Positions 22,492 to 45,772 of a DNA stretch of 64,000 nt are shown in pieces; positions within the stretch are counted from its first letter, which is position 1, and the number at the start of each line of letters is the position of its first letter. The translations under genes and the position numbers were made by a program. Where the stretch lies: assembly GCA_965202585.1 (NCBI GenBank), contig OZ241832.1, positions 38,316,001-38,380,000 of the forward strand, in the 5' to 3' direction. The stretch comes from Thalia democratica. Its lineage: Eukaryota. The notes beneath the pieces were generated by a model. The model saw only the letters and a program-made list of their open reading frames with translations, was not told the DNA's origin and made no database searches.

Positions 22492-25400
22492 ATGTACGGT
22501 GACAGCAATTACAGCTCGTTCTATTTAAACAACTACAGTTACGAAGGTTACGACGATGTTTATGACAATTACGACATCGATTCTAGCAATTACGGTTATT
22601 TCGCGAACGGAAGCGAATCAGGAAACGAATCCTGCATACAGATGCTGGATCTGATATACCAAGAAGACGAGAACTTCAGTCCCACGAAGTTGTTTTCCGG
22701 AGAAATATTTACAGCTTCAATGTTCGTCGTTTTGGCAATGATAGGATTGGTTGGAAATGGGCTTGTAAGTGTTTTTGTTTTAGTTTACACATGTTCAAGT
22801 TGTAGAATAGTTTCATTGAATGTTTAAGCTATTTGTTGTAGCTTTTAAAAAATATACCACAGTTTTTTAACTATTATTTTGATAAATATTGTATTTTTGT
22901 TTTTAGAAATATGTTTTAATTACGTATCTGAAATACAACAAATAGTCTAAACCAAAAAAATCTTTAAAGATACAAATATGAATTAGGTAAAAAATTTTGA
23001 CTAAAGTCTTTTATATTACTGAAATTATAAATGAAACTTTAAATTATTTTAAGAGTTGTTTTGATTATAAAGTTGTTTAGTTTAAAGCACCACGGAAAAT
23101 AAAACTTCATAAATGTTATAAAACTTTTGAAAATCCATTGATACAATTAAAAAACAACTATTCTTTTTTACGCTAATCTAATAATAACTTGATTGCTTAA
23201 AAAAATGTTGTATGATATTGTGAGAAACAAATATTTTATTTAGAATTATCCAACTTACTTCTAATTTTAATTAACACTCAAAACTCACTTTGTTATTTTG
23301 GTAATTTTACCTAAAAAAACATAAACTTTTCTAAAACATTTGGATAGTATAAAAAAGTCCTTTAAGTCTAAAAAAAATATTGTTTTGCTGCTTATTTATA
23401 TATAAATATAGTACTTTTAGTTTTATGGAGCAAAAAAGTTTCAAAAACTCAATGAAAAACTAAAGCAACCGCATAAACATTTTAAATCCGATTTTTTTTT
23501 GTTAAAACATTTTAACTTCAGGTGCTTTTTGTAATCTTTGGGGGCAAGGAGACGACAAAAACTGTTGCAAATATTTACATCTGGAATTTAGCGCTGGCTG
23601 ACCTACTTTTCGTCTTAAGCCTTCCATTCATGGCTGCTCAACGGTTTCTCCTAAGATGGCCTTTTGGTGGCTTTATGTGCAAAGTTAGATAAAAAAAAAT
23701 AAACTTGTTTTATTTTGATTACTTTTCAGTTTGATTTATTTGTCAAACACATAAATACACAACAAAACGGTTACACAAACGAAACAGAAAAATGTGAGAA
23801 ATACTAATACTAATATTAATCCTAATACTAATACTAATATTAATCTTTTAAGATCTACAGTACTTCCGTGTTTTAAATTTATAGTATTTTAATTACAAAT
23901 AATAGTTTATAATTTTAAAATTATTCCATTTTTTTTTCACAATAAGGTAACAAGACATAATTTTCAAAGTTTAAACTAGCAAAGTGATAAAGTATTCAGA
24001 AATTAAAAACTAAACTTGTCTAAACCTTATTAGAGTAATGTTTATATATATATATTAGTATTTATAAGTGATGTTTAATTTACCTCTTAAAGTTTTGTTT
24101 AAACTGAAAACAATGGCTTGTAATTGCGTGATTTTCTGTACTGTCAACGGCTATGTAAATTTTTCTACAATGTTTACTAAAAACTTTTGATTAAGAAAAA
24201 GTTCACAAAAGTAATACTTCATTAATTGTAAAAATTATTAGGCTAGTTTAAAAAAAAAAAATATCATTTTATTTACTATAGTTAATTTTTTAGTTGCTTT
24301 ATTTTACATTTTTAGCATATTAAAAATAAAATAATCATATAAAAATTTTAAACTAAGTTTTAAAACTTTAAATTAAAGTTAAAATACAACTATATTTGCT
24401 CTTAGCAGTTTATTTTATAAAATTATATAAAGTTTGCTTTAAAAAAACTCAAAAGTTTTTCTAATTTGTTTATTTAGGTTTTATAAATTTAACTAAAGGA
24501 AATAAAAGTGAAAAAAAAAACTAAGTTTTATAAAGTTAATATTCATTTCCTTGTTTTGACAAAAAGTTATTTTTTCTCCCTGAGCAATTTTTTATAACTT
24601 CTTAAAAAAATTGAACTTGCATTATTTTCGGGTAAGTAAAGTTTTTAGAGCATACACGAAGCCGTGTGTGTAAATTCAGATAAAGTTTGATCAACTTGTA
24701 AGAGTAGTAAATCGTAACTAAGCACCGGAACCATTAATGACATCATAGTGAAGTGGCATTTAAGTGACCCAAAACACCTGCTGTAGCTACTTTATGCGAA
24801 AACAAGTTTCGAAATAAATCTTTGAATATATCTGTATATTGAAACATTGCTCGCATACGTTTGAATATCTTATCAATATGATACAACAACTTTTCCATAA
24901 AATTTCATTTAAAAGCGTTTGACACTGTGTTTATAAAAAATTTCAAGCTAATAAAAATGACAACAGCTTCAGTGAAATAAAAGTTTAGTTTTAATTTAGT
25001 TTACTGCATTTCAACATGTTTACTTTAATTTAGGTGCGATTCAAACTGACCGTTTAATATCAAATTAATTAATTTTTTAATTAGCGAGTAAATGTACATA
25101 AACGTTGAATGCGCTTTTTATAGTTCTCTAATAAAAATAGTAAGTTTTTATAAATACTTACAACCTATCTGAAAGCTGAAACCCATACCTATTATCTAGA
25201 CAGCCTACCTTTTATTAAATTAACATTCACTTTACAGCTCGTGGCTCAACAAAAGTTTTACGAAACAATTTGTTAAAGTTATAATGTAGCCATGTGTGGC
25301 CGGACAGCACAGTTATTTTCTAATGCCGGAACAAGATTAAATTAGCCAGCTTCCTACAAGTTTATAGGCAGATTAAACAGCAAAAACTGCTCGCCGGGAG

Positions 25401-28400
25401 AAAAGGATGCCGGATGCAAAACAACTGCGTCTGACATAATTTCGAGCTCAGTGCAGCTCGATGGCTGTTTTGCAATTAAAACGGCGCAAAAGTGATAAAT
25501 GTGTTTGCGCTCAGCAGATAAGAGGCAAGGCTCAAGCCAGCCATAACTACAAATTGAATGTTTACTGCTGCAATGTTTATGTATGAGTTTTATCTGTGCA
25601 TCAACAACAACAAATGAGCAAAAGCCCATAAAAGCATAATAAATGTATGATAACAAAAAAACTATGATAAATATATGTTGACATCGTTATAAACTCAATA
25701 AATCATTTGTTTTGCATATGCGGACGTTGAAAACTTACATCATACACTAAAAAAAAAGCTTGATTTAATCGGTTACGCAAGTGTCAGTTCTTCAAATTTC
25801 GCTTCTTAAAACCAATACACTTTTCAATTTTCGTTCAACAGCGCAAATTAAAATCGACTACGACAAACGCACCACAGGAAGCCATCGCTTTCAAATTGCG
25901 AAGCCGCCACTTTGTCACCGCTGCAATGCCTCGAACCACTTTGTTTTTGCATCGCGAACGCACGAAGGGCAATTTGAAGCAATCGATGAGGTATTGGCGG
26001 AAGCTGTCTTTTATATCGCCTGCCTGTTGCTCCTGCAAAGTCGCATAATTGAAAACGCATGAGAAAATTGCTCGTAAACCTTCAATTACGCGCGAGTGCG
26101 AGCGCCCAGTGTGAAATCCGATCACAAAAAAAAAAGCGAAAGAAATCTGGCAATTTAGTTGAAACGCTATATTTTCAGGAGACTTTGCAAAAATTTAAAG
26201 TCTTACGTGCTTGAAAATCACGGTCATTAAGAACTGTCTTGTTTCGAAATGAACACTGAGTTGAAGAATTTTAGCTGGGTTGACCTCGAAAAAGTTTAAA
26301 AGTTTACACCAATGAAAATGATCGATGCATCTGAATACTAAAAATCAGCAGTTATTTTTGTGTAATAAATACAAAAAAGAAGGCACTGGTAATTTCAGTG
26401 TACAAGTGTTTAACTTGAGTCTAATCAAGCTGAAAGCGCTAAGAATTTAATTAAGTAAAAGGGGATTGGTTCGTTGTTTTCCCACAGATTAGCGCCAATA
26501 TACATCTGGATTATTGCTTTTTTTCTTACAAATCTTTCAGAAGTATGTAAATAGCTTAATTAATACTCATTATTCTTAAAAAAAATGTTGACAGCTTTAA
26601 AATTGTTATGTCATATCTTAAAACTATTAAGTAATTTTAAAATACTTTCTAAAGTGAAAACTACTTTAAGACAAAAAAAAATGTTTTCCGTCTTACAAAA
26701 AATCTTCTGTATAACTTTAGTTATCATAATGCCTAAAAACAAAAGGTTTAATTTGCACTCCTTAAGTATAAGTGACTTAAGTAAACTTCAAATTAATTAA
26801 ATTAATTTTACTTTTTCAATTGCATAAATATCTTTTTTCACAACACCAACTTAAATACAAAACCTTTTGAATTTAGAATAACGTTATATAATCACTTACG
26901 TCGAAATATTTTGTACATTTCTATAGTATTATTTAAAATTAAACTGAACAAAGTAAAATTAATCTGATTGAATTGAAGTAAAAAGTAATAATCCGATTTT
27001 TGGAAATAACTTCACTTTTATTAGTATTAAAAACATTTTTTCAATACTTTTTTTTTACAGATTGTGGAGGCAATTAAGTACCACAACTATTATTCAAGTG
27101 TTTGTTTTTTGACAGCCATGTCTATTGATAGATACTTTGCTGTAGTTCATGTAGTTAACTCAGTCAAATATAGAACAGCAAGAATGACTGCTTTTGTAAG
27201 TTAATGTTTATTAAAATATAACTACTTTTTTTGTGATGGTTATACTTTAATAAGTCAAATTTTTTTTAGGTTTGTTCAGCGATTTGGATTTTATCATTTA
27301 GCATGACAATTCCGCTTGTGATGAATATTATATTGGATGAAAGTAAGTATTTATTTTAAAAAATATTACAAAAAATTATATACCACTTTGATCATCAGAC
27401 TGTTATTCATGTTATAATTGTCGGAGTTGTATGATCAAACATTTATAATAACTTGAGCTTGTCTCACAGCATATGTCCAGGCTTTGGATCTGATAGACTA
27501 TCGCCGATGTTTTCTTTGATTAGACAAAACATCAGTATAAATTTGATTACCTACATCAGAAATTTTTTCTAAACGTGAAACATATTTTTAGTGATCTTTC
27601 TGAACGTTTTTTTAGATTGCTTTAGTTTTATAAAAAAAATCTATGAATTGAAAGTTTTATCTGTAAGAAACATCAGAAATTAGATGTTTAAAATATTTTA
27701 TTTAATTCCAATATGTAAATGTAGAGGTAAAGCTATTGAAAACAAAAGCATTTCAGGTTTTATATTAACTTCTTAAAATAAAGTAATAAATATAAAAAAA
27801 ATAAAGATATTATCAAGGTAGTGCTTTAGTTTAAATAAGTAATTCCATTATAATTTTTTAAAAGCTGGAAGATGCTCACTTAATTTCATTCAACCGTCCA
27901 ACTGGGAAAAGATTGATGTAGAAAAGCAAGACACAAGCTCGATATTAAAGCACTACAAAACTGATCCTGACACTTTGTCACCGGAAGACTGCCAAAAACT
28001 ACTTCAAAGTCATTTTGTGTACTATAAAGTCAATGAAACCGAATTCAAAAATGGTACATTTTTATTATATTATGTATTTAAATTGTTTAAGAGTTTAGTA
28101 ATTTCTTTGAAAAACATCAAGTTTTACATTTATATAGAAACTTAACGAAAAAACTAACTTTGGAAACTTTAGAAGTGTAAATGTTGCTTAATGCTTCTAT
28201 AGATAGTTAAGTTTAGCTTTGACTTTATGTAAATTTTAAACAATTAATAAAAAAACTTAAGTTTCATACAAACTCTGATTACAATTAAAGGATTAAAACA
28301 ATTTAAAGTGAATTAAAAACAACTTTTTTTTTTGATTTTTAAAATAAAAAACTGTTTTGGTTTGTTTCTCTTTGAAGGTGAATATTTTTTAACAAAGTTT

Positions 28401-31400
28401 TTAACCTGTAGTTAGTTTTACAATAAGGTACAACTTTTCAAAACACTTATAAGCACAAATAAACTCCTACAAAAAATATTTCAAGCTATTACTGAGAGCT
28501 AAATTAACAAGTGAAGAAAAAAACTTTTCAATCACACAGAAACGGTGCCGGACACCGCAAACAACCCGCTGGACTCATGCACGCAAACTTCCAACGACTT
28601 GTACAGAGCCTACATATGGTTCAGCTTCGCCTGCGGATTTTGCGTTCCGTTCATCGTCATTGTAATTTGCTACACGCTCATAATAATGAAAATTCTCAAG
28701 CCAAGCGAGCTAAAAGTTCGCTCGACACAGGTTAGAAATATTGTTGCTTTGTTTTTTTTTTTGTTTTTTTGTTTTGTATCCAAAACAGTTTTTTAAACAA
28801 GTTGTGCTGGTGTAAAGTAAAAAAAAATTCTAAGTTATAAATTGTTATGTCAAAAAGTTTTAAGTGAAAGAACTTTTTCAATGTAGTTTGTTTTCACTTA
28901 AACTATCAAGTGTAATTCAATGTTTGCTTTAAAATGTTAAGAAAATTTAAAAATATAAAATAAAAATAAACGTATTTCTACATGTATAAAGTCATGAAGT
29001 AAAAGTACATTAAAATGTATAAATATTATTACTTATGAATAACCACGTTAAGTTACTACAGAATTCTAAACTTGCACGTTAAGTTTGACAAATGATACAC
29101 AACAGACCATGTAATTCTTGAAATATATTTTGAATAATTACTTAGACATTAAAAAACTTATGTAACTACGGTTTAAAACTATTTTTGATTATTCAGAAAA
29201 AGATTTGACAGCTTTAATTCTTATCGTAGTACGATTTTATCAAGCGTAGTATTGACAGAGTTGGGAATAATTATAAAAAATGCGGAAAATTTAGTAAACA
29301 TTAAACAAAAGGCCTGCTTTTCTGGTGTTTGGTAGTTTTTTAAAACTTAATAAACAAGAATTTAAATTGAGCTCGTGATAAAAGCATTAGGTTATTTTAT
29401 TGAATCTTCAGGTAATAAACTTCAGCTTTAGTAAACACAATTTAACTTTCTAGGTTCTTTTGTTTTTACAAACTTATTACTCAGTAAAAAAAAAACAGAA
29501 CAGTTTTTGTTCTGAGCAATAATAAATTGCTTTGAAGTTTAAGTGTAAAGCAATTATATAAAATATTTCTGCATGCATTTGTTTTCATGAAACCAAAGCG
29601 ATGTCATAACGTTGCTTTCAAAGCGCAGAGATAGGTCAACCGTAAACAATTGTCAAAAAGTACGCAACAAGTTTTGCTATCCGATTAGAATTTTTATACG
29701 CTCACGCTTAATCGTAGCTTTTTGTATAAAATCTGAACTATAAAATTTCGTGTTTACTTATGTGAGATTACGTTTACTTAATGTTTCTGTGTTTCGTTTA
29801 AAAAACGATGTTATCCTTTGACAAATAGGTTTTTCGACTTTATAAGCTTTTTTTTTACCAACCAATTATGCTGTCAGATAAAACTAATAGATTAAAACAC
29901 TCACCTCTGCTATTAATAGAAACTAACTAACGCCAATCTGAAATAAGCTTTTTGTGACTAACTTTTCTGTCCGAACGTCGCAACAGGTGTGGCGAAAGTT
30001 ACCGGCATTCGAAAGCGAAGGAACAAAAAATCAAAGAAACGACCACCCGATAAAATTCTAACGCGATTATCGTCCTCATCTTTTGATCAAATCCAAAACC
30101 GAGAGCTTTTTCAAAGGCGAACGTGACAAGCTCTTAACAGACGGCCGACTTGACCGAACCATATTTTGTTTATTCACCACGAAACCCCATTAAAGCATGC
30201 TAAACCGATTAAATTTACATTACGGTATTGAGTTCAGTAGATTAACTTCTACAAATAACATTTAGGGTATTACGATAGCGGATCAGAAGTGTATAAACAG
30301 CATAAAATGTTTGTTTATTGAATGAAAGAAATATAAACTTTCATTTTTTTATGGTTCAGAGCTAGTAAAAATTTTAAGTTATATCCAGCCGTTTCTATCA
30401 TTTAAATTCAATTTATTTAATTAAAGCAATACTTTAGTAGTTAAGTAATAGGTTTTAACACTATCTTACTTTAGATGTGGTTTTGTTTACTGAAGTGTAA
30501 AATACTTTTTATATGTAGTTAGTTTTACTGTTTAAATAAATGATTTAACTAGTACCAAATACATTTCAGGAAAAATTATAACGTTTTTTTTTGTACCATC
30601 AAAGCTTAGAGTATAGTTTTTTTAAATGTTACAAACTCATAAAACTTATAGTTTAATTTATATATTTGTAAATAAAAATTGTGAAAATAAGAAAGCAAAA
30701 ATCAATGCACCAGGGTTTTATAACCTCATAAATTTGAACTTATTTGATTATTACCATTACTATGATTGTTTTAATGATTTCCGATTTAGAGAAAAATGAG
30801 CGTTCTAGTTTATAATAATAATAAAAGGCCCGCTACCAGCCGGGATGTAGTTTAGTTAATACAAAAAAAAAACTTTTTAGGCTGAAAGAAAGCGTAGAAA
30901 AGTTACGAGAATGGTAATTGCTATGGTGACGTGTTTTTTTATTTGTTGGTTGCCTTATCATGTTTTCCACCTTTTAAAACTGAGAGGAATCACACTGTAT
31001 GCAAGCTATTGTGAATTGATATCAGATGTAACATACATACTAGCCTTTACTAACAGGTAATAAAAAAGGTTTAAGTAGTAATAACATAAGTAGTAATAAT
31101 ATTTAAGTAGTGTTTGTTAAAAATTTTTTTTTTTTAATTTTTTGTTTTGATGAAAATTCCTTTCGTATTTAGTTTAAAAGTTTAAGTGTAAAGTAGTTTT
31201 TGTTAAAATTTTAAGCGTTTATGGTTTGAAAACTTCTTAACCTGTGTGAGAAACTAAAGCTTACAAAATAAACACGAACGAAAAACGACTATATAGTAAT
31301 TTTTAAAACTAAGTCACAACTATATTTTAACATAAATAAGTCTTTTAATCTTGAATTTGCAACCATGAAGAGCTTTATAAATTTAAATTGATTTTATCAA

Positions 31401-33088
31401 AAACTTTATTTTATACCAAGATAAACAATTATTTTTTTAATTTAATAGTTTCTTTAAGTATATACAAAGTTATATGTTTCAGCTGTATAAACCCTATACT
31501 GTACACTTTTCTTGGGCATAATTTCAAAGACAGACTAAGAAAAAGTATGACAATTACACTAAGAAGCTTATCATTATCTACATTTACTAAATACACATCA
31601 AACAACAACACTACAAGGTGAATAGTTTTATAAACATAGTCTTAAGCTGCAATGTGCAGTCTTCTGATCACTTTAAGTAAAAATTTTTATGAAAAAATTA
31701 TTGAAGTTTATAAAATACTTAAGCTCGAACAAAACTTAAATCATTTATATGTTGTTGATTGTTATACAGAGGCGGAATTTTTTGCACTGTTTTACTTATA
31801 TTTTTAATTTTATTTGATTTTACTTTTTTGTTTGATATCATAAAGAAAAAATAGTATGGAAACTACTAAGTTTCAAAATTATAGTTTTAATTATTTTCAT
31901 TTATTTTTTTTAAATAGTGTTTCACTCAAAAAATGAGACGTTACTTAATAATAAAACTTTTTTTATAAAATAGAATAAATCTTTATCTTTAAAGATAAAA
32001 GCTTTAAAAGTTGAAATATTATTAAAAGCTTATTTTTAAAAACTTTTAATTTTTTTTACAAAGGAAACAGTAAGTATAAATAACTTGTTTGTAAAGTTTT
32101 TTGTCTGCAATTGCATTAAACTCAGTTATTTTTTGCTGTAAGTATTAGCATGTAAACGTTGTGTAACAAATAGTTTTTGGTTTTATTTGGAATGATGCGA
32201 AAATACGCAGTGGGGTATTAATAGATGAAAATTGAATGCTGATAGAATTGAGGGCTTAAATTGAAGTTTTGCGGTAACTTGTAAGGGTATAATTAAATCA
32301 ACGAGTTTGTAATTATCAAACAATCTTAAACAGTCGAGGTGGAGATAGCAATCACCACAGAAACAGAAGATCTGAACAGCTTGACAACAAAAAATCCAGC
32401 AGTAAGGTAAGTTATCGTTGATAATTTGTGAACCAATTAGGTGTGTATAAACTAATTTAATACTATTACGACTTTCATTTAACTTTGAAGCCGGATTTTA
32501 GTTGTTTTGATACCCAGTAGTTTTTATAAAAGCTAAAAAGGTTTCTTAAAAGTTCAAGTTGCATTTTACACAACATATAAACTTAAAAGAAAATGTAAGT
32601 TTGTTATATGTTTTTAACATTGCATATCATTTGAAAATAATATAAGTTTGCTGCAGTCAAAAATATTTTTATTTTCGATCAGTATACCATATTCAACAAA
32701 ACATGAAAAAAAAATCTTCAATGTTTTAACATTTTAGTGTTAAGTCATTTATTAACAAGAAATTTAGTTAACTATCGTAAAACTGTAAAAGCTAAATGAG
32801 TTTAAAAAAATAAATATTTGTTACGTAATTATTTGCAAATTGTATATTTATAGTTTTTTATTCTCATAACATAAAAATTATGAAAATTTATGTTTTCCTC
32901 CCTTTTAATGAGCGTTTATGTAAAAAAAACAAATGTAATTAAAACCAGTTGAAAATTGTACACTTTAAAGTTTAAAGCAAAAACTCTGCTCAAAACTTTA
33001 CTTACTTACTTTTTTAAATTTAAAACAGAAAAGTAATAAAGGCTACGATCAATCAAAAAGATTACTCTCCGCTTCAAGCACAAAATAA
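22492..33088 (+). CDS. Class A (rhodopsin, gamma-group) peptide/chemoattractant-type GPCR, paralogue A; 10 exons, 488 aa
   Basis: Exons 22492-22764, 23522-23683, 27061-27195, 27270-27342, 27865-28053, 28540-28730, 30881-31056, 31483-31617, 32334-32406, 33029-33088 join in frame through GT-AG introns. Motifs [56 protein letters not shown]. Exons 9 and 10 are less certain than exons 1-8. Confidence 0.92.
23808..23846. repeat. (AATACT)n-type microsatellite
   Basis: AATACTAATACTAATATTAATCCTAATACTAATACTAATATTAATC. Confidence 0.8.
27383..27515 (+). mobile_element. Family H1 copy 3 (3' part only, with inverted 5' stub) in GPCR-A intron 4
   Basis: 27430-27515 aligns with 3748-3838 (TGATCAAAC..TTGAGCTTGTCT(C/A)ACAG..AGACT(A/T)TCGCCGATGTTTTC). 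27385-27400 is the reverse complement of GTCTGATGATCAA seen at 15846. Confidence 0.7.
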
Positions 33089-35146
33089 AGTAATGGTTTC
33101 ATAGAATCATCAAAAGACCAATTTTCCTCTGTCAGTTCGACTCATCTCTATGTGACACTTTCAATGTTGCAACCTTTCATGGTGCTAATCGTTTTACTTT
33201 ATATTTGCTGCTAGTTGTGTTATAAAATTCTTCTTGTGTAGTTTTATAAAAAAACATTTTGTAAAAATTTAATTGTGATTCTGTATTGGCTAACTACGCT
33301 CTAATTTTACTGGAAAATAAGAAAAGCATAAGCTATGAAAGATGTTATAAAATCAAAACTAATTGAATACTTTTATACTATAACAAACTGGTTTCTTACC
33401 ACTGTTTTTTGTTTTAAAGAAATTTACAGCCGAATAATTTTAGTTCAAACGTATGTTCAATTAGTGACAAAATTAATTCAACTTCGTTTTTTATTTGAAC
33501 TGCATTGTTTTTAATCGTTGCTAATAAAACCGAACTGTTTTTAGAATTTCACTTTCAGAAGCAAATTTACATAAGGTTGATTTAAAGCTTAGCATAAAAG
33601 ACTCAAGTTTAGAACGTTACAATTTTTATTTGCAAAACTAAATTATGAATTAAGAAACGCGTTAGTAATACGCAATTTTTTTTTTTGGTTCAGGGTCAAC
33701 AATAAAATGTTAGACCTTATATGAAATTTTCACTAGTTCCAACGATATTTTACACTGAAAAAAGACTTATTTAAAATTAAAATTAATTACAACCGAAAAA
33801 TCTTAAACCTTAAGTGGCTTAAGTTTTTATAAGCATTTAAAAAACTTTGAAGAAATTAAACAGGATTTTGTGTTCAACTTTTGTTAATCATTGTAAAAAA
33901 ACATACAGATTAAAAACAAAATTATATATTTTACTAAAAATTGTTCATTACGATAGCATAAGGTAAATTGTACGCTGGCTGGATTTATACTGAATTAGAA
34001 TTTAATTCGTCAGTACAAAAATATCTAAGACCAACACGAACAATTTGTTTTTGCAAATAATTGCTGCTTTACTTGAACTCACGCTATTCCTATAGTGCTA
34101 CATACTTTTATATTTAACGGCAAGACATATTTTTAAACAAGAGTTTAAACTTTTTTTTTTGTAAACAATATTTTGTTTAAAATTTGTCAAGGCTTATATT
34201 CTTACAGTAAAAACAAGTTTTAATAACAACAAACTAAATTAGGATGTTGAAAAAAAATATTTTTTTTTTATAATTTTATAATTTTGATGAAAATTTTAGG
34301 TATAAGGGTTAATTAGAAAACTTCTACTACAAATGCAGTCTAAAGTTTTACTTTGGTAAAAAAAAATAAACTGAGTATTTTTTTTGGTTATGTACAAACT
34401 TAAGTTCATAGTTTTCAACCTAAAGTTGTTTGTTAACATAACTGCCTAAAATATAAAATAACAAAGATTATGGGAAAATCTAAATAAATACTAAAAAAAA
34501 AGTAAACACGTTTGCAGATTTTAAAAACAAAACATACAACGTCAATTTAAATTTAATTTCAAAAACAAGATACCCAATTTAAAAAACAAATACGAGAAAT
34601 TGCATGAATTAAAACCGTTACCACATAAAGTAATGAATATTGTATCTTATTATTTTGTTAGTTGCTTAAACTTACTTATAAAATTTAACTACAATATTTA
34701 CCAAAACAAAATAAATTGATTTCATTTTCATCGTGTTTTACTTTATATTTTTATGTTATTTATAAATCGTCTTATGTGCAGTTTTGTAATAAGCTTTATT
34801 GAAATACCAAAACTTCAAAACATCTGAATAATGATATAATAAGTTAAAATTTAAAACAGCCTTAGTTGAACTTCATAACAAAACAATAAAAAGATTTTTT
34901 TATAAGAAGTTACCTTTGATGTACGAGCAAACATTTTTATCAACAAAAAAAATATTAAAAATGTTTTCTTTTGACTTATGAACTTTACAAAATGTTGTAA
35001 TAATATCTATAATAATACTAACCAACAAAAAAAAGTTAATGGTAGAAACTACAAAGAAATGCTTAAAATCAATTTCATATTTCAATGCCACACGGTATAT
35101 TAAACAGAACAAAAAAAAAACTTTTGGGTTCTTCTGGTGACAATTT

Positions 35147-38100
35147 TTAGACCAATTTCAGCTGGTCACTGTTTTTTATTTTCGTAAATTGATTGTTATG
35201 GTTGCTTTCACGCTCTTTGCTGTTTTTAATAGATTTTAATTGACTTTAATAGTTAGTCTCATAGAATTTTAAACTAAACACTTATATGTTTAAACTTTTT
35301 ATACGTAATAACTAAAAAATAATAGAAAACTTCTTAGACAAATAATAACACTTTTATAATAAATTTATACATTTTCTAGTCAACCTTTTAGGCTTTAAGC
35401 CTTTAAACTACCTTGTTACATTGTTGGTGTTTTTAGAAAACTTGGATATGGTTAAGTTTTTAAACGTTGTTTCCACACTTTTTTTCAAACGACCTTTGAA
35501 GTTTTGACCCATAAATGTGTAAAGTATAGGGTTAAGGCAGCTATAAAATATAATTAGAGGTTAAACATTGAAGTTAGGTATTCTGCTGAAATATTGTTTG
35601 ATTTCAACAGTTGTAACTTAAATTTAAAAATATTATAAACTATATTAGTACGTATTTTTTAAACAAATTTACAAAAAAGTTTGAATAAAAAAATAAAACT
35701 TTATTTTTCAAGATTTGAGGCCTTTATCTTCACTTTTAATATATTATTTGTTGTCTGTTTTTGTTACTGTCGTAATCTAGTTTACTATAAAAATCTCAAT
35801 AATACTAAATAGTATAAAATAAGTGTTTGATAAGTTATTTGGATTACTATTATGTTATTTGTTTTTCGTTTTTTGATTAAACAATAACCTACTATTGAAA
35901 ATGTTTAAACATTTAGTTTACTAAATTTTTTGGTTCTACTAACAAAAACTGTTTATTTGAATTTAATCTAAATAGAATGAATTCATCTTACTTTTTAGCA
36001 CTTATACTTTATGTTATAACTAAAAAATTTAAACATAACTCACTCATTTTCGAAAAAAGTTTGTTAATTAATTTCGTTTAGCTCTTCTTCAGAATAATAT
36101 TGCTAAAAACTATTAATATTATGATTTAAGTAATGTAGTATACATATTTAAATGTCATTGCGGAAATGACTACGTAGGTCAAACATCTCAACGTTTCCAC
36201 GTCAGGCGAGAGCAGCATGACACAAAAAAGCTTAAAAGGTTTATTTTTAATGACGACGTGAATTCAAAGGTGAACAGTCATCTATTCATCAGCACCTCCT
36301 CAACAACCCTGTTTGTGCCGAGAACTACCTGGATAATAGGTTCGAAATTCTATCCCGAGCTAGAAACACCTACGATCTTTCAGTTCTAGAACCTTTGTTT
36401 ATTAGAACTCGCGAGCCAAAAATTTGCAAACAAAGAGGTTTTTACAATTTAAAACTTTATAAATAGCGTATTTAGTAGTATTATTGTTGTTGTTTTTGTC
36501 GTATTTTTTAATGTGCTTTTTATTTTCTTTAGTTTTAGGTAAACATTTCTACTATTTAAAATGATTTTGTTTTAGCAATTTTGTCTTATAAATTACTTCA
36601 AATTAGCTCAGTACAACTCAATTCTATTTTTCAATTTTTTTCTAAACAGACTTTTATACTTCATGACGTAACTATTTTTAGCTAGACTTTTCAAATTCAT
36701 TGTATATAATTAAAATTACTCTATAATATTAATAGTTTTTAGCAATATTGTTCTGAAGAAGAGCTAAACGAAATTAATTAATACAGTAACCTCTCGCATC
36801 TTTACGCACTCGTGACGTTACGCACTCTCATTTAGTTACGCATTTTAGATTTCTAAAAAACTCAAAAAATTAAAGTTATAATTTTTTATAATATTGCGCA
36901 AATTACATTTATTGTATATTTTAATTTAATTTTTTTTTTAAATGCTTACTCACCCTCAATTTCCTTAGACTTTGTTAACTTATGTTCCTTGACTAAAAGA
37001 TAAACATTTAGTTATACCTCAGTATACCAGTAATTTTGTTAACAACAAGAGAATAAATTAAATTTCTAAAATAAATATGAATGTCTTTTATAATGAAATA
37101 ATGAGAAAATAAATCATAAATAAATAATACAGCTCTATTGCCCTATATATGAATAAACACCATTCCTTAATTGTAAACAAATGCCTAGTTTTAAATTGTA
37201 TTTGCTAAGTAGAATAGAATATAAATGTTAAGTATCAAATAAGTGACAAATAAATAACGATAAAGATAAAATCTACTTATTACTAAAGTTAGTAAAATTT
37301 TTCTACTAGTATTATTATTTTAAATAATTTCATGTCCTTCTTTTAATATATGTATAGTTTTATCATTTGTTTTCATATTTAAAAATAAAGTAAACAAGTT
37401 GTTAAAAGTTGAAAAGTCTCCAGTCTGCTTTTAACTAGAAGCAATATCAAAAAACAGCAATTATAGTAAGTATATTTGCTACCTCTCGTATCTTTACGAT
37501 CTCTCGTATCTTTACGCACTTTATCTGTGGACACAATGTGCGTAAATAAGCGAGAGGTTATTGTAAACTTTTTTCGAAAATGAGTGAGTTATGTTTAAAC
37601 TTTTCAGTTAAAACCAGTACCAAAACCAAACTATTCGAAAACTTTATGCTATATTAATAATTAAAAAAAAGAACTATTGTTGTTTAACTTAATGTTGCTT
37701 AACAAGAATTATCTAGATAACTTAAAGAACTATTTTTACTAAAAAGGTTTATCTTATATTTTTGAAATTAGATTTATTACTGAATAAAAAACTTTGATTA
37801 ATGTAAGCAAACAACAAGGTTTTATATAAAAATTTTTTCTTTAACAAACACAATAACACAGCTCGCAAATAATTTTTTTATAGTTTAGTTTTAGCCAGTG
37901 ATAAATGTACGCTGAGTAAAATTTCATATTCAATAATATGTATTATTTTTGAGTTAAATACCAAAATTTAACAAGCAATGCATAGAAAATCAATTATAGC
38001 TACAAATTTATTTATTTATTATTAAGTAACCTGTTAGTGAACGCAAGAATAAACGAAAAATCTTCGATAAACTTGCATAAGTTCAAGGTTATGTTGACGC

Positions 38101-41100
38101 CTTTTAACTTCATCAGATGAAAAGTGTGATAGGGCAACCAACAAATGAAGAAACATGATACCATGTAAATTACCATTCTCGTAACCCGTTTTCTTTTTCT
38201 TTCTGCCTTTATTTAATAATCGAACTTCAGAGTACTGAATTTAATTTTTTAAATTTAAAGACAAATGAAGTAAAACAAAAATTATAAGTGTTTAATACGT
38301 ACAAAACTTGTTTTAGGATAATCGCTGCTAACTTATCCAATTAAAGGTCAAAGTGAATTTAAATTTTTGAACTAAGCTAATAATTTTGCTCAATTAAGCA
38401 TATTAAGCGTTTTGTTCGACTCAAAGATAAAGCTCAAGATCAAAAACTTAAAGTAAGACAAATGTTTTACGAAAAAAAAACCAAAGCAAATCAAAACCTA
38501 TAGAAACAAGAGCGTAAAGTAAAATCTTATTTTTAAAATCATATCCGTGTTTACATAACAGAAGTTGCAGATACTGTTTAAACTTCAGTCGTTTTTGTTT
38601 ATATTTAAGCCTATCTGCTGTGGGAGTGCTAACAGCTTTATAAGTTTTGTGCGACTGACCCATTGTTATAGTAACAGTAACCGCATTATTGCTATTTCAA
38701 AGTCTGCAAGTTGTTTTTATTTTCGCATAGTTTGTGTTGTTGTTTAGACTTAAGTTGCTTGAAGTTGTAAGCTGTTTTGATGCGTTGCGGCTTACTTTGA
38801 TGTGTACAGGAGACAAATTTTAGATTCAAATTTTTTTTTAATAAATAAAACATAAACACTGTTTAGTCAGCTTCACAAAAAAATTGAATTTAAAAATGCG
38901 CGAAAGTTTTCTACTTTTTACTTGTTATGCAAAGTTTTTTTTTATGAAGTTGATTATTACAAAAGTTAAGTAGGTTAAAGGAGCACAAAATGTAACGGTA
39001 GAAGTAGTTTTACTAAAAAAGACATAGTCCTCAAAATTTTTATCTTTATCTTAAAATCCTTTTTAACCAGAAGTTGAGACTTTTGTAAATTATAAAATCT
39101 TATTTTATCAAATTTGTTCAAATATTACATAAAAATGCTAATAATTCTAATTTCATTTAGAGTAAAGCTTTTTTACTTAATAAGTCGATTAACAAAGTAT
39201 GTTTTTAAAACAAAGTAAACATTTCAATAGTTTGATAAGTTATTTACAAAAAATTGCTTACCGAAGCAGACCTGACTTTCATATCACTTGGCTTGAGTAT
39301 TTTTACTATGATGAGCGTATAGCAAACTGTTATAATAAGAAGAGGTATGACGAAACCGCTGAAAAAGAAGAACAGTATAAATCCTCTAAAAGTGCTGTTC
39401 TCTGGATGTGCACAGGTGTTGTTTTGTGAAATTGGATTTATAAGTTCAGAGTATGGAACTTCCGATGCATCTGTGTTTTTTTTAATCAATTTTTTATACA
39501 GATTTCACTATCTATCATCACATAGAACTAAAAAAATAAATTTTTGTTAGCTTCTTTGTAAATTAAGATAAAACTATTTGGTTAAAAAATATGAAAGTTT
39601 AAAAAAAACAGTTTTATTATATTTAACAGTTCAAATATATTATATACGACTATACTAAAATAAGCTTAAATAAACAATTTTTTATGAAAATGTTGTAGAG
39701 GTTGGCAACTATTACAGTCAGCCGGCTAATTTTACTACAAAAAAGTCTTTTGCGGGTCGGACATGTTACGCGGGCCGCGTCATTTGTATATGCATCCTTT
39801 ATTAAAAATTCTTAAAAAAAAATGTTTTTGAAATATTAGTATATTTATTAATGTGTACTAAAAGTCAAGTTGTGAGCATATTTAAAACAATTGTCCTAAA
39901 AAACTAAGTTTTATTTGATTGAACAAGATGCTTTTGAGCCTAGAGGCACGCCACAGGCCGTACGTTATCCACCTCTGAACTTACGTTAACTATATGCATT
40001 TCTTTATAACTTAAATAGGAAACTTAAACGAAAACCAAAAACCTGTATTTCCAACATTGTATTCGTCACCGTAATCACTATAATAGTTAGCGTAAGGTTG
40101 GTTATCAGGTTCAACTTGTCTTTCTATGTGATCAAAAAAGTGTTCTATACAACTTTGATTCTCTTTTTTATCGTAAGAAAACTTTTCTTTTTCATTAAAT
40201 GAGTCGTCATAGTAAGAGTTAGGGCCAAGGTGCTCCCATTTTAACGGCTTTTTGAAGTTGAGAGAGCACATGCCATCTGTCAGATAAACAAATGTAAATA
40301 TTTTTCAAGTACAATATTGATAAAAAATATTTGTTGTACAGTTTATAGGTAAATAACATTAGAAAGTAAAAACAGTTTCAATTAGTAAACAATTCAAAGT
40401 GTATAAGTTTTGACTGAAATGTAAATAATCAACAACTTTGCAAATGAAAAACCAAATGTACCTGAAAAATGTAAAAACTAGGTTTCATATTGAGAACTTT
40501 TTTAAGCTGTTATAAAATTAATGTTCTTAAACTTAGTTTTTTTTTATTGAAGTAATAGTGAAAAAGTAATAGTAAAAATAGTAATAGTTTAAACTTATTT
40601 AGCAATAAAGAAACATTTTTCCAGATTTTTTTAAAACTAAATATGCTTTCATCAGTAAAACAATTTAACAACCTGAGTCAATATAAATGTTCATTAAAAT
40701 AGGAACTGTCATCACCAGAGATATAATCCAAATAGCTGCGCATACCTACAATATAACACCTAGATAAGAATTCAAACTAAAGGTCAAAACTTAAAGTTCT
40801 AAATAATTTATTATTAAAAAAAATAAAAAGGTATATTTACAATAAAAAACTGACTTACAAAAGAAGTTGTTCTTGCAGTTCTGTATTTAACCGAGCTAAC
40901 TACGTGGACGACAGCAAAGTATCTATCAACAGACATGGCTGTCAAAAAACAAACACTCGAATAATAATTGTGGTCTTTCATCGCTTCTACGATCTGTAGG
41001 TTTTTGTAATCATTGAATAAATAAAAAAATGCGATCAATTCATTTAACTACGGTCTAAATTTGTTGAATTTTTGCAAAAATGTCAACTGGGAGGTAAAAT

Positions 41101-44100
41101 TTTATTGAACAAGATTTTAAAAAGTGTTAAAAAAAGCTAAAAGATTTAAACACTTAGTTATAAAATTTAGAATTATATACAACAGCTTGTGTTAAAGATG
41201 TTAGTAAAAATTTTATAAGAGCATTGAATTGCTAATTCTTTGCTAAATTAGTTGTATACTAGCTATAATTATCAAAAATTTAATTTTTTGTTATTGATTA
41301 AAATATAGAATCTAAACATACTCACTTATCATTAACGTTTGTATTTTATCATGAATATAATTAAGGTCTTAGACAAATATTTTCTTATTATGTTTCAAAT
41401 AACTTTAAACTTTGACAGACTAAAGTTTAAATAAAATATTAATGTAAAACATTTTTTTTACTCTACTATATCTTTAACTTTTACCTTATTTGACTGACTT
41501 AGTCAAACACTTTTTAAGATAAAACAATATATTTCTTTTTGTGAGATGGTAAAATATTTAGTGGTGATTTTCTATAGTTACTATTAAGCTTAGATTTCCC
41601 ACGTCAAAAGCAGCTTTAAGAAGAGAAATTCCTAAGTTATAACTTATTACTTCCTTAATAACGAGATTTTATCAGCAGTCATTCAACTCCCTGGATTAGA
41701 ACTACTTTTGGTCAAAATATTGTTGACTACTTTTTACGAATGACTATAAAAACATTCCTTAACATTGATAGGCAGTAAGTTTTTATTGAAAATAGTTACA
41801 AAAACTACATTAAAACTTTAAGGCATATAGAGATGATTGAATTTGGACGTGTTAAATATTTCCATTCAGGTTATCTAGTTGTAAATACTAAAAAGGTTGT
41901 ACAAGTTTTTAAACCTTTTAATTATCTCAAATTTCATTTAAAAGTTATAGTTTTTTGACAACAATATTAAAAATTGTTAAAGTTTCTTGTAAAGACTTAA
42001 TTGTATACAAATTTATACCAGAAAATTAAATAACAATATTAAAAAATTACGGTTAAGCTTTTTTTAGTTGTTGTTTAGTCAACTATAGAATTTATGCTTA
42101 ATGTAATAAAAAGTAGCCAAATGAAATATACCTAATTCAAAACTAACAATCAAATAAACTATGATTAACAAACTTTTTTTTTTCTTATCAGAAAACTTAG
42201 CTAAATCCCTTTCGTAGATCAATCACTTATAAGCATGAGCTGTCACAGATAGATTTTATCAAATAGTAAAAGCTTTATTCGTAAAGCCGTTATTGCAAAA
42301 AGTGAATACACGTGTAATCAAAGATAAGAATAAAACATTTATCGAGAGTTATAAGGATTTTATAATAAATTATAAATTACTTGTAAAAGTAAAACAAATT
42401 TTATAAAAATTTTTAAATGCCGTCTTTAGTTAAACATTCATTGTGACCCTTTCAAAGCATTTTATTGTACTAACTTCTAAATGAATTAATCAAAGCTGTT
42501 TGCATATACATATCTGTCTTATTAATCATAGTGCTATAGCTAAAATAGAAAGGGGTCAAAAGAGATCATTCTTATTTGAAATACATTGAATAAGTAAGTT
42601 TACATCATAGCTTTTAGGCAAAAAGAAAGATTTTAATTCAAGTTAAAAGTGAGATTGTTTTTACTGTTTATATGTGTACTAATTTTGATTTTTGTAACTA
42701 GACAGTTTAAAAGTAAAACTTTCTTTATAAATAAAGAAATATTTTTGTGATATTTTTTTATAATGCATACGAAAACCACAACAATTGAGTTTATAGAAGA
42801 TTGATTAAACAACCATACGTCCTGAAAAATACATAAGTATACTTAAATTTCAATAAAATACACTTTATTTTTTTTAATCTATACAGGCATTTGAAAAAGC
42901 TTGTACTACTTATTTATCGTCTTCAAAAATAAAGTTTTATATTAAAGTTAGGATTTAATAAAATGTTTTCAAAAGTACATTATCACTTAATAAAATACCC
43001 ACTGGATACTTTACTTTACCTTTATCTACGTTTCGTATCTATTGAATAATACGTTTTCATGGTATGTAAGAAATTTTATACTTCTAATTTTAAGTATTGT
43101 AAGAACAACTTGGTACATTTATTGGAAAGATTAAAGTTTTGCTGATTTAATGCATAAGCTAAACAAATATTTTTTTTATAGTTAATGAAAAAAGTTACTT
43201 AATTAGTTTTAAAATTACCTTCATATATTATAGTTGGTAGTAAACTTTAAAACGTGTCAAAAATGACTTTTTAATAACTATAAAACTTATTGTTTATTTA
43301 TTTTCATGTAGTGATAATTACAGCCTAGACATCTTTTCTTATCTGTATTTACCTAATAAATGTCCATATAAGTTCATAACTTGAATTTTTAATAATGTAT
43401 ATATTATGTAGACTTAAAAAAAAGAGTTTGTAGTTTAAAGTCAAACTATTTTTACTGGTTATTTTACATGTTTGTACTAATAAACTCTGAACAGTAACTT
43501 CCTTTACTAATTAAAATGCAGTAAACAAAATTTATATTAAAGTATCATATCAATTTAGGTTGTTTAGATAAGTTTTGTGAACTTGAAAAACTAATTAAAT
43601 CTAAGTTGAAATCGTGGTAGTTTAATACAAAAAAGTTAACTGTGAACTTTTGCTCATTTACTAGTTGAAAATTAATTAAAGACTTACAAGTGAAACTTTA
43701 AATCATAAAGTATATTTGTCGCTATCTTTTTTTAATTTTAATAATTTAAAGATAAGATTTTAACGCTAAAAGTTTTCAGTAGAAACATTTGTTGGTGAAA
43801 ATATTTTAGTATAATACTTGGTACATAGTGTACTATTTTTTAATTTATATAAAAATATAGATATTTTTTTGAACAATATAAAACTTATTAATGGTGTATT
43901 GTTTATTTTCACTTATAATTTATTGTTACTTGAGTACATAAGTTGTTATTATTACCTTTAACTATAAGTTAGTTTGTATGTTACTATATAAATGATATAA
44001 CCAACTATTTTTGTGAAGATAACGAAAAACTTGTTTAGTTTAATCCTTTATATACTTTTAAAAACTAAAAGGACCTTTTGTTGATATAATTAGTATACTA

Positions 44101-45772
44101 ATACTTTATGGGATATTAAAGTAGTACGATAATTTAAAATTACCATTATATTTTTAAGTAAGTATATAATAAAAGCTTTAAAATAGTTTTTTTTATCTAT
44201 TTTATTTAATATTTAGCTCGTTATGGAGTTCTTTTTTATCACTTGCTAAAATTCTTATTTTCAACCTTAATAATACCTTAATCTCAACTTAATTGAGCTT
44301 TATAGTTTCATAAAAGTAATATACATAGTTTTATATTACATTTAACTAATTTAATTAGTTTTAGTAATTTCGTTAAAGATATTTTTTTCTTATTAAGCTC
44401 ATTTTTTTTAGCTCTCCCTATCTTTGGTATAAAAGATAAATGTTTAAAACTTAATACTTTGAATTTAACGCTTCAGCTTTGTTTAAAAATCAATTTCAAG
44501 TATTTAGTAGTACTAGCTATTGTTTTGTATATTTTCTAAATTGCTGTTTATATACTTTTAGCTTTTCACTAACTTTGCACATAGTTAAACCAAACGGCCA
44601 TCTTTTAAGAAATCTTTGAGCTACCATGAAAGGAAGAGTACAAACAAAAAGTAGATCAGCCAGAGCCAAATTCCAGATATAAAAGTTTGCAACAGTTTTT
44701 GTCGTCTCCTTGCCCCCAAATATCACAAAAAGCACCTGAAGTTGAAAAATGGTTTGTTTGTATTTAAAACGACACAAAAATACAAACTTTGGTAAAGAGG
44801 ACGTTGTAAAAACTTGTCAACGAAGTTCAGTTTACTTAAACTTCAAGTATGTTTTGTAATTAAAATTAAGGATTCTGAGCTTTACTATGTATAACTTTTT
44901 TTTCAATAGATCTCTTAACTTCTTAAACATAGACGTTTGAACTATATATTTTGTTTTAAAATCTTACTAATATGTTTAGTGCTTACGTTAATGTAGTAAA
45001 AATTACACACAAGACATATTACAGTAACAACTTTTTAATTTTAAGTCAATGAATACTAAAAGTTTTATTTTTGACAAGACTTGATGCTTTTCTTGTAAGT
45101 TCTGTGTTTTTTAAATATGTACAAAATCATACACTAAATTATTTACGCTATTTTAAGTTATAAATAGCTTTTAATATTTATTTATAGAATAGGTTTATCT
45201 GAAGTATTTGTTATGTAAATGTAATTATATTAATGTAATAAATCTTATATACATGTATATGCAAGTATTTCACACTAAAATAGCTCATAAAGTTAACATA
45301 CTCTTCAAAAACTTTAAAACATAAAAAGAGTTAGTTTTGTTTCAGGAAATAAAATAAAGTTAAATTTTATATTTTGTTCGCAGTAAACTTCAGTTTTAAG
45401 CAACTATGTATATATATATATATCTGTCAAATTGATAGTCTTTTTTTTAAATTTAAATAGATTTTTAATGCAGCACAAAACTAAAGTGAAAAAATACAAT
45501 TTCAAAATTTTACCAACCAGACCATTACAAACTATTCCAACGAGTGCTAATACGACATAGGCGCTTGCTGTAAAAATTTCTTCAGTGTTAAGCTCACTAA
45601 GATCAACTAGATTTTGTTGATGTTCCTTGTAATATTTTTCAAAATGTGTGCAGTTAATATCAAAAGTGAAGTTTTTACCACTACCGTCATCAATATCGTA
45701 ATTTTGGTAGCTGTCGTAATTGTAATATTCCCCGTAATCTTCAAGAGGATTTAAACCAGTTTCAGTATCCAT
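35147..45772 (-). CDS. Class A gamma-group GPCR, paralogue B; 9 exons, 481 aa, convergent with paralogue A
   Basis: Exons 45772-45518, 44735-44574, 40993-40859, 40745-40673, 40276-40043, 39470-39262, 38206-38031, 35540-35412, 35219-35147. Intron phases match paralogue A, and exons 2, 3, 4 and 7 have identical lengths (162, 135, 73, 176). Motifs SVDRY, CWLPYH, NSCLNPILYTFMGQNFK. Confidence 0.92.
36015..37612 (+). mobile_element. 5'-truncated Penelope-like element (GIY-YIG remnant, 3' UTR and hammerhead-like motif) with an inverted 3'-end copy at its 5' side; interrupted by a MITE
   Basis: 36132-36466 translates, with one frameshift near 36268, to NVVYIFKCHCGNDYVGQTSQRFHVRREQH..SSIHQHLLNNPVCAENYLDNRFEILSRARNTYDLSVLEPLFIRTREPKICKQ..LYK*. 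36015-36122 is the reverse complement of 36723-36783 joined to 37566-37612. Confidence 0.85.
36784..37563. mobile_element. 780-bp TA-flanked MITE (Tc1/mariner/pogo-type ends)
   Basis: TA|CAGTAACCTCTCGCATCTTTACGCAC ... GTGCGTAAATAAGCGAGAGGTTATTG|TA; internal repeats of CTCTCGTATCTTTACG. Confidence 0.8.
39695..39790. mobile_element. hAT (Charlie/Tip100-like) MITE fragment
   Basis: AGAGGTTGGCAAC..GCGGGTCGGA..GCGGGCCGCG resembles CAGGGGTCGGCAA..GCGGGCCGC-type hAT ends. Confidence 0.4.

Follow-up and report, generated by a model that had tools for sequence, protein, structure and literature searches.

A tail-to-tail pair of class A receptor genes in Thalia democratica and its relation to somatostatin-type and chemokine-type receptors

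A 64,000-nucleotide (nt) stretch of the salp Thalia democratica (contig OZ241832.1, positions 38316001-38380000 of the forward strand in an 802-Mb assembly, GCA_965202585.1; hereafter the window) is gap-free, has a G+C content of ~25%, and carries a pair of receptor genes at 22.4-45.8 kb. Both are multi-exon genes for class A G-protein-coupled receptors (GPCRs), gene A on the forward strand and gene B on the reverse strand, so that they converge tail to tail. The predicted proteins combine motifs of somatostatin receptors (SSTRs) with extracellular features of chemokine and anaphylatoxin receptors. The questions raised by this locus are to which of these groups, if either, the two receptors belong, and what kind of ligand such a combination may serve.

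As predicted from their sequences, A and B encode intact class A (gamma-rhodopsin) GPCRs. The CWxP and NPxxY microswitches are conserved in the family, the domain PF00001 (7tm_1) is recorded on orthologues, and DRY, W6.48, N7.49 and Y7.53 are present in 7-8 of the 8 family members compared. A and B are paralogues within a tunicate orthogroup, T1. It is probable that they arose by a local inverted duplication in the salp lineage, and that T1 is part of a tunicate radiation lying between the SSTR/opioid-type receptors and the cluster that includes the relaxin-3, chemokine, angiotensin and anaphylatoxin receptors. In this explanation, the long acidic N-terminus and second extracellular loop (ECL2) would serve in ligand capture.

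Position among the gamma-rhodopsin receptors

A HMMER search with exon 2 over 1.8 billion representative sequences identified protein P0004 (479 amino acids (aa), 93% identity across exon 2), and relatives were gathered by a full-length search with P0004. The three top-ranked matches of the exon search, P0001-P0003, were set aside as run-together predictions of tandem chemokine-receptor-like genes, each with several matched stretches. T1 comprises A, B, P0004, the thaliacean transcripts P0151 and P0152, proteins from Clavelina, Ciona and Styela, and two Logan transcripts. Orthologues from Clavelina, Ciona, Styela and other thaliaceans are 42-93% identical to A/B, and the ascidian members and the Logan transcripts are at 40-46%. 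A second tunicate family, T2, is 34-39% identical. It includes a Styela protein named "SSTR2-like" as well as proteins of Phallusia and Ciona that bear the label "C3a anaphylatoxin chemotactic receptor-like". A third set of ascidian proteins, Tx, has been automatically named SSTR2-like, SSTR5-like, CXCR4-like or kappa-opioid-like. So wide a range of automatic names in itself shows that similarity searches cannot place these proteins.

Placement was examined in three maximum-likelihood (ML) analyses of the seven-transmembrane core, run in IQ-TREE under LG+C20 PMSF (posterior mean site frequency). The first tree contains 81 sequences; the second contains 92, with RXFP3, ACKR3, GPR182, LTB4R, an FPR-like receptor, lamprey AGTR1 and Tx added; and the third contains 68, with NPFF and TRH receptors as the outgroup. 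An early FastTree analysis, in which the family stood beside the chemokine cluster, was not relied on and was replaced by these three. T1 is monophyletic with the Ciona, Styela and Clavelina proteins in all three trees (support 100/98-99), and T1, T2 and Tx together form a tunicate-only clade (100/99), referred to here as the radiation. The clade of SSTR, AstC, MCH, NPBW and opioid receptors is monophyletic without the radiation in the three trees (97-99), and so is the group of RXFP3, a further tunicate set of receptors here called group U, and the chemokine/angiotensin/chemerin/C3a cluster (98/93 to 99/96). In the rooted order, the galanin/kisspeptin/AstA receptors diverge first and the SSTR-type clade second, leaving the radiation as sister of RXFP3 plus the chemokine cluster (96/87). 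Most likely, then, the radiation split off between the SSTR/opioid type and the relaxin-3/chemokine/angiotensin/anaphylatoxin cluster, and is the sister of the latter.

Approximately unbiased (AU) tests were run on the 81-sequence set. Constraining the radiation to group with the vertebrate SSTRs is rejected (p = 4e-6), as is grouping it with the core SSTR/AstC/NPBWR/opioid receptors (p = 0.004); joining it to the chemokine cluster while leaving out RXFP3 and U gives p = 0.041. An intermediate position had been put forward in the initial annotation. That proposal holds to the extent that the radiation is nested in neither the SSTR/opioid clade nor the chemokine/angiotensin/chemoattractant cluster in any ML tree, and that the two narrower SSTR constraints fail; it is left less secure on one side, where the AU test does not reject a sister relationship to the whole SSTR-type clade (p = 0.167).

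That last result counts in favour of a rival explanation, in which A and B are fast-evolving tunicate orthologues of SSTR/AstC receptors, expelled from their clade by tree artefacts, and bind an unrecognised somatostatin-like or AstC-like peptide. The best PDB sequence matches of the pair are SSTR2/3, followed by opioid receptors, and the best fold and embedding matches are likewise opioid receptors and SSTRs. The ascidian T1 proteins carry the NCBI/UniRef name "somatostatin receptor type 2-like", and a search of the genome with salmon SSTR2 found no gene closer to the SSTRs. However, the AU rejections of the two narrower groupings stand against orthology, and no true SSTR orthologue was found in Ciona (Ocampo Daza et al. 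2012, PMC3560075).

The residues of the binding pocket also argue against it. The Asp at position 3.32 in transmembrane helix (TM) 3 of SSTRs and opioid receptors is the counter-charge for the Lys of the ligand. This Asp is present in all eight vertebrate SSTRs, both opioid receptors, both NPBWRs, both MCHRs and 9 of 13 invertebrate SSTR/AstC receptors, but position 3.32 is Lys in 8/8 T1 sequences, and the T1 pocket is for this reason predicted not to be of the somatostatin type. Additionally, the T1 ECL2 is four to five times longer than that of SSTRs. The name carried across T1 thus fails both the phylogenetic and the Asp3.32 tests, and studies that infer somatostatin signalling from such names in tunicate expression data may be misled.

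Two motifs, KVTRMV and a near-match to the TM7 signature, speak for the SSTR reading. The motif mosaic described in the initial annotation is real, in that KVTRMV occurs as in SSTRs and the helix-8 form F-L/M-G..F as in the chemokine cluster. However, the KVTRMV junction is shared by T1, SSTRs, T2 and the galanin/kisspeptin group, and the helix-8 form by T1, the chemokine cluster and the galanin/kisspeptin outgroup. Because both are present in the outgroup, they are best read as retained ancestral states, which would account for the mosaic look of the proteins and for similarity searches that reach SSTRs and opioid receptors first, despite the tree. The SSTR signature in TM7, YANSCANPILY, is matched at 10 of 11 positions in the Clavelina T1 protein (YANSCLNPILY) and at 8 of 11 in A and B (FTNSC(I/L)NPILY), and it overlaps the general NPxxY region. 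Taken together, SSTR/AstC orthology is considered improbable.

Characters typical of the other neighbouring group are incomplete as well. T/S2.56 and P2.58 are present in T1, but position 2.60 is Met, Ser or Asn, in contrast to Trp in 5/5 AGTR, 6/8 chemokine-type and 2/2 RXFP3 sequences. Trp2.60 and Pro7.36 are common to AGTR, chemokine-type, RXFP3 and U receptors, whereas T1 has Asp at 7.36. Position 7.39 is Phe or Tyr in T1 and Glu in five of eight chemokine-type receptors.

Several points weigh against the placement as sister of the relaxin-3 and chemokine cluster, and against the wider explanation of which it is part. The reference set was assembled without apelin, C5a and urotensin receptors and without human sequences, and it includes only single bradykinin-like and formyl-peptide-like sequences. 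The NPFF and TRH outgroups are distant, and long-branch effects are possible. To these are added the p = 0.167 result and the top ranking of SSTRs and opioid receptors in pairwise sequence, embedding and fold searches. Outside the trees, RNA support in gene B covers exons 5-9, with exons 1-4 modelled by homology alone, and the acidic Tyr cluster of ECL2 is no longer present in gene A, so this feature is not obligatory.

The best match to salmon SSTR2 in the genome was an intronless 349-aa GPCR with 30% identity. It was rejected as an SSTR: it belongs to group U, has a DRW motif, and stands beside RXFP3. Other intronless GPCR genes in which DRW replaces DRY occur at C6:45795693-45796565, C6:45861241-45861612 and C6:39.52-39.56 Mb (L016-L021). 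These group with the ENA proteins P0255, P0189 and P0208 beside the relaxin-3 receptors and are probably tunicate RXFP3-like receptors. Urochordates are reported to have relaxin-type receptors (Aleotti et al. 2024, PMC10792014), and group U, with its intronless members in this genome, probably matches them.

Extracellular architecture and candidate ligands

The N-termini of A and B are 64-70 aa long, each with a net charge of -12 and 8-11 Tyr. Five of these Tyr in A and six in B have at least two acidic and at most one basic neighbour within 5 residues, a context predicted to be of the sulfation type. Tyr makes up 17% of the N-terminus of A (11 of 66 residues) but 4.8% of the remainder of the protein, so the enrichment is above the protein's own background despite the AT-rich genome; acidic Tyr clusters also occur in ascidian orthologues from less AT-rich genomes.

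ECL2 is similarly unusual. The loop spans 86 aa in A, 107 aa in B and 83-107 aa over T1 as a whole; the range is 70-85 aa for T2 and 13-34 aa for 45 sequences of the SSTR, opioid, MCH, NPBW, galanin and kisspeptin types. The vertebrate SSTR loop has 18-22 aa and one Cys, whereas the T1 loop has three Cys. The canonical Cys lies 6-7 residues past TM4 and is followed by an insert of 70-90 residues; in A, the loop contains 16 acidic (Asp/Glu) and eight basic (Lys/Arg) residues. A very large acidic ECL2 after the canonical loop Cys is a trait of the C3aR type that is also found in T1, and the curlew C3aR in the same alignment has an ECL2 of 57 aa with five sulfation-like Tyr. Sulfation-like Tyr in this loop number six in B and 4-9 in B and most orthologues, but 0 in A and P0004 (window 27865-28730 in A versus 40276-39262 in B). 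Ligand capture may have been partitioned or altered between the two paralogues, and the loss in A and retention in B of the acidic Tyr cluster provide a natural pair for the study of loop function, given a ligand to work with.

An AlphaFold2 model of P0151 (mean predicted local distance difference test (pLDDT) 71, core 85-95) has seven helices and helix 8. Its ECL2 begins with the usual hairpin, in which the canonical Cys directly follows TM4. Beyond the hairpin are a disordered stretch, two short helices (238-263, pLDDT ~72-76), a second disordered stretch and then TM5. The solved folds nearest to the core of the model are the mu- and delta-opioid receptors and SSTR2.

The Cys residues of these segments were thought in the initial annotation to form a disulfide between the N-terminus and ECL3, as in chemokine receptors. 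The N-terminal and ECL3 Cys are indeed both present in 10/10 T1 sequences examined, as in 10/10 AGTR/CXCR/CCR sequences, and occur together in none of the SSTR-type sequences; the Tyr clusters recur in the orthologues as well, and neither of the results named in the initial annotation as refuting its reading was obtained. The proposed bond itself is doubtful. Across 26 radiation sequences, a Cys ~9 residues before TM5 and the ECL3 Cys are invariant and Cys3.25 and the canonical loop Cys nearly so, whereas the N-terminal Cys is absent from at least 10 of the 26 or lies within a leader of hydrophobic residues. All 10 T1 sequences, A and B included, have an N-terminal Cys, mostly in the context N-C-S/T, together with a T1-specific mid-ECL2 Cys. 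T2 has neither of these two consistently. Given this co-occurrence, the simplest reading is that the Cys at the top of TM5 would pair with that of ECL3 across the radiation, and the N-terminal with the mid-ECL2 Cys in T1; a chemokine-type bond between the N-terminus and ECL3 seems less likely in T1. Tx has odd Cys counts and fits the proposed pairing poorly.

A model of ligand recognition can be built on these features. The acidic, probably Tyr-sulfated N-terminus and ECL2 would capture a cationic peptide or small protein, part of which may then enter a TM pocket lined by the T1-conserved residues Glu3.29, Lys3.32, Tyr3.36, His6.55 and Asp7.36. Signalling would run through a heterotrimeric G protein and be shut off in a phosphorylation-dependent way by means of the conserved Ser/Thr-rich tail. 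The ligand may be a basic protein or peptide, as the initial annotation also supposed.

It may instead be that the ligands of A and B are short neuropeptides specific to tunicates, as is the case for the Ci-LF, Ci-YFV and Ci-NTLP receptors of Ciona, and that the acidic Tyr loops play no special part. Lineage-specific class A GPCRs of Ciona bind Ciona-specific peptides with nanomolar potency (Shiraishi et al. 2019, PMC6475428), and the TM core of the pair resembles that of peptide receptors. Ciona genes described as somatostatin or opioid/somatostatin/angiotensin receptor-like mark the neural gland and cerebral ganglion (PMC13542503); however, the identifiers of these marker genes could not be mapped to T1. 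The long ECL2, the Cys set and the acidic Tyr clusters are conserved from ascidians to salps, which argues that the loops have a function. Such neuropeptide receptors are a real, if rather unlikely, alternative.

A broader proposal has the whole radiation (T1, T2 and Tx) as the invertebrate-chordate counterpart of the entire vertebrate chemokine/anaphylatoxin/angiotensin cluster. T1 would then act like chemokine or C3a receptors, and sulfated Tyr of the N-terminus and ECL2 would capture a secreted protein that is cationic, such as a C3a-like fragment or the tunicate TAFA homologue. If so, chemoattractant-type two-site signalling would be older than vertebrates, but the chance that this is correct is judged to be small.

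Another reading, in which A and B would serve blood cells as receptors for anaphylatoxins (C3a-like) or as immune chemoattractant receptors of another kind, and would share this function with the sister family T2 and its C3aR-like large acidic ECL2, appears quite unlikely. T1 does stand in one clade with T2 and Tx, T2 holds the Phallusia and Ciona proteins with automatic C3a receptor names, and the big insert after the canonical loop Cys of T1 recalls C3aR. Ascidian C3a/C5aR candidates with a large Asp/Glu-rich ECL2 are expressed in immunocytes (Peronato et al. 2020, PMC7565592). However, the clade of C3aR, C5aR and chemerin receptors is vertebrate-only in all three trees, with the radiation outside it, and the pocket residues of T1 and T2 differ.

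Gene structure, transcription and copy number

The sequence confirms the tail-to-tail paralogous pair described in the initial annotation, although the gene models had to be corrected. Coding exons number 10 in gene A (488 aa) and nine in gene B (481 aa), the proteins are 55.6% identical, and all exon junctions are GT-AG. A plain reading of the open reading frames misses the ECL2 exon in both genes, two C-terminal tail exons in A and one in B. Seven-exon models (382 aa for A, 380 aa for B) were rejected after alignment with P0004, which has extra residues between TM4 and TM5 and a longer tail, both of them encoded in the window. The Cys of DSCTQ (A) and NTCAH (B) is the third loop Cys, at the top of TM5; the canonical ECL2 Cys sits in the missed exon. 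All of the strings first quoted for the pair, including the acidic Tyr-rich N-termini, ESCIQ/INCTH, SYCEL/NLCKF, KVRS..VTRMV and GHNFKDRL/MGQNFKGRL, are found in the sequence.

The transcript of gene A (22456-33546, forward strand) has a 5' untranslated region (UTR) from at least 22456 and a 3'UTR to at least 33546. Exon 1 (22492-22764), which ends at a GT donor, holds the start codon, the Tyr/Asp-rich N-terminus with its Cys (ESCIQ) and TM1. It is followed by exon 2 (23522-23683), with the first intracellular loop (ICL1), TM2 (S/T-x-P), ECL1 (WPFG) and Cys3.25; exon 3 (27061-27195), with TM3 (Glu3.29, Lys3.32, DRYFAVV) and ICL2; and exon 4 (27270-27342), with TM4. Exon 5 (27865-28053) holds the first part of the long ECL2, in which GRCSLNF contains the canonical and EDCQK the mid-loop Cys, and exon 6 (28540-28730) holds the end of the loop with the third Cys (DSCTQ), TM5 and the start of ICL3 (KVRSTQ). 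Exon 7 (30881-31056) encodes TM6 (CWLP), ECL3 with its Cys (SYCEL) and the start of TM7, and exon 8 (31483-31617) encodes NPILY, helix 8 (GHNFKDRL) and a Ser/Thr-rich tail. The C-terminal tail continues in exon 9 (32334-32406) and ends with the stop codon in exon 10 (33029-33088).

Gene B lies on the reverse strand. Its start codon is at 45772, and transcription reaches 35077 or further. The exons modelled by homology are exon 1 (45518-45772), with the start codon, the Tyr/Asp/Glu-rich N-terminus (EDYGEYYNYDSYQNYDID), its Cys (INCTH) and TM1; exon 2 (44574-44735), with TM2 and ECL1; exon 3 (40859-40993), with TM3 and ICL2; and exon 4 (40673-40745), with TM4. Exon 5 (40043-40276) encodes the long ECL2, which includes the acidic Tyr cluster YANYYSDYGDEY and in which GMCSLNF contains the canonical and QSCIEH the mid-loop Cys, and exon 6 (39262-39470) encodes the end of ECL2 (NTCAH), TM5 and the start of ICL3. 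In exon 7 (38031-38206), AERKRKRVTRMV precedes TM6, the ECL3 Cys (NLCKF) and the start of TM7; the motif KVRS..AERKR(R/K)(K/R)VTRMV spans the exon 6/7 junction in both genes. Exon 8 (35412-35540) encodes NPILY, helix 8 (FMGQNFKGRL) and tail, and exon 9 (35147-35219) encodes the final 24 residues and the stop codon.

Exons 1-8 correspond between the genes, the seven intron positions and phases are identical, and four of the eight corresponding exons are equal in length (162, 135, 73 and 176 nt). The pair was therefore made by an inverted duplication at the DNA level and not by retroposition. In the 81-sequence tree, P0152 branches before the A/B split while P0004 and P0151 are of the A type, so the duplication is younger than the divergence of P0152 and older than the split of the species with A-type sequences. 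The branch of B is longer than that of A (0.42 versus 0.07).

Transcription of gene A is reflected in L007, a 1967-nt Joint Genome Institute (JGI) metatranscriptome contig; its protein product, P0151, has 93% identity to A. L007 matches the window at 92-98% nt identity in exactly ten blocks, corresponding to all 10 exons. Between A and L007, the synonymous rate (dS) is 0.137, the non-synonymous rate (dN) 0.031 and dN/dS 0.225; gene A is, by this comparison of coding sequences, shown to be under purifying selection. For gene B, Logan contigs from one marine metatranscriptome run were compared with window positions 34300-40300. A 591-nt contig joins exons 6 and 7 to a 129-nt stretch consistent with exon 8 and, after it, to 35219-35077; the acceptor at 35219 yields the 24-residue end and the stop. 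A second contig spans the ECL2 exon (40048-40279) and extends beyond it. The RNA contigs are ~95% identical to the window and, to judge from that divergence, come from a close relative or another population.

In the B exons, seven of the 15 listed differences from the related transcripts are synonymous. Differences in TM segments are mostly synonymous, and four of the eight listed non-synonymous ones cluster in ECL3 (codons 397-404; window 38031-38085), beside the conserved Cys. Within the ~1.5 kb between the 3' ends of A and B, a 392-nt contig from the RNA run matches 34557-34952 at ~91% identity with 10 gaps; it may represent a longer 3'UTR of B or a transcript of its own. A very high-copy repeat (35908-37716) sits in the B intron that separates exons 7 and 8, and in two genomic runs the summed depth of contigs climbs there from ~100-400 to 10^4-10^6. 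The repeat has many internal joints, one of them between opposite strands (36026/37591), and is probably a nested or inverted transposable element.

A and B are the only close copies in the genome, and the next exon-2 matches are 41-42% identical. The T2 family is greatly expanded: at least 21 separate TM6-TM7 exon matches form a ~0.5-Mb tandem array at C8:36.97-37.48 Mb, on the same contig as A/B and 0.84-1.35 Mb before the window, and a further gene lies at C1:50888658-50899373. The best matches of two sampled array members are T2 transcripts.

Comparison with known receptor systems

The closest comparison is with the single ascidian T1 proteins of Ciona intestinalis (P0154), Styela clava (P0155) and Clavelina lepadiformis (P0153), which have 42-46% full-length identity to A/B. 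Like A and B, they have six extracellular Cys, an ECL2 of 83-107 aa, Lys3.32 and the tail motif TF(T/S)(K/R)(Y/F)T. They differ in copy number, with one gene each in these searches as opposed to an inverted pair in the salp. Their current name is a similarity label, which neither the tree nor Lys3.32 supports.

SSTR1-5 and the opioid receptors give the highest pairwise sequence and fold matches to T1 (186 bits to SSTR2; TM-score 0.88-0.91 by target). KVTRMV at the start of TM6 and DRY-AVVH occur in both, T1 comes close to their TM7 signature, and the TM bundle is probably of the peptide type in each. However, T1 lies outside their clade and has Lys3.32, an ECL2 of 86-107 aa in place of 18-22 aa, extra Cys in the N-terminus, ECL2 and ECL3, FLG in place of FLS or FLD in helix 8, and many exons. 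With the chemokine/angiotensin/anaphylatoxin cluster (CXCR, CCR, ACKR3, AGTR1/2, CMKLR1, C3aR) and RXFP3, T1 shares the acidic Tyr-rich N-terminus, the N-terminal and ECL3 Cys, T2.56-x-P2.58 and helix-8 F-x-G, and with C3aR the large acidic ECL2 after the canonical Cys. It is not nested in this cluster, however, and is without Trp2.60, Pro7.36 and Glu7.39; its ICL3/TM6 junction is SSTR-like, and its Cys pairing may differ. T1 keeps ancestral features of both neighbouring groups on a branch between them, and may therefore be a useful outgroup for the origin of the chemokine, angiotensin and anaphylatoxin receptors at the base of the vertebrates.

Tunicate receptors of this general kind have been described before. 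Twelve "unclassified chemokine receptor cluster-like" receptors of Ciona resemble the cluster by BLAST without phylogenetic support (Kamesh et al. 2008, PMC2396169). The vertebrate chemokine-receptor-plus clade is reported to have a small number of orphan sequences from urochordates as its nearest outgroup (Aleotti et al. 2024, PMC10792014). Both sets are tunicate gamma-group receptors that are chemokine-cluster-like by BLAST and lie outside all vertebrate subfamilies, a result of the kind obtained here; the architecture of ECL2, Cys and Tyr is not described in those papers. The orphans of Aleotti et al. fall inside RXFP3 with weak support, whereas the radiation here falls outside RXFP3 plus the cluster. 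The general placement is thus already published, with weak support and without structural detail, and the orthologues stand in public annotation under a misleading name. The family is new neither to the databases nor to the literature, and A and B are further members of a known group of orphan tunicate receptors.

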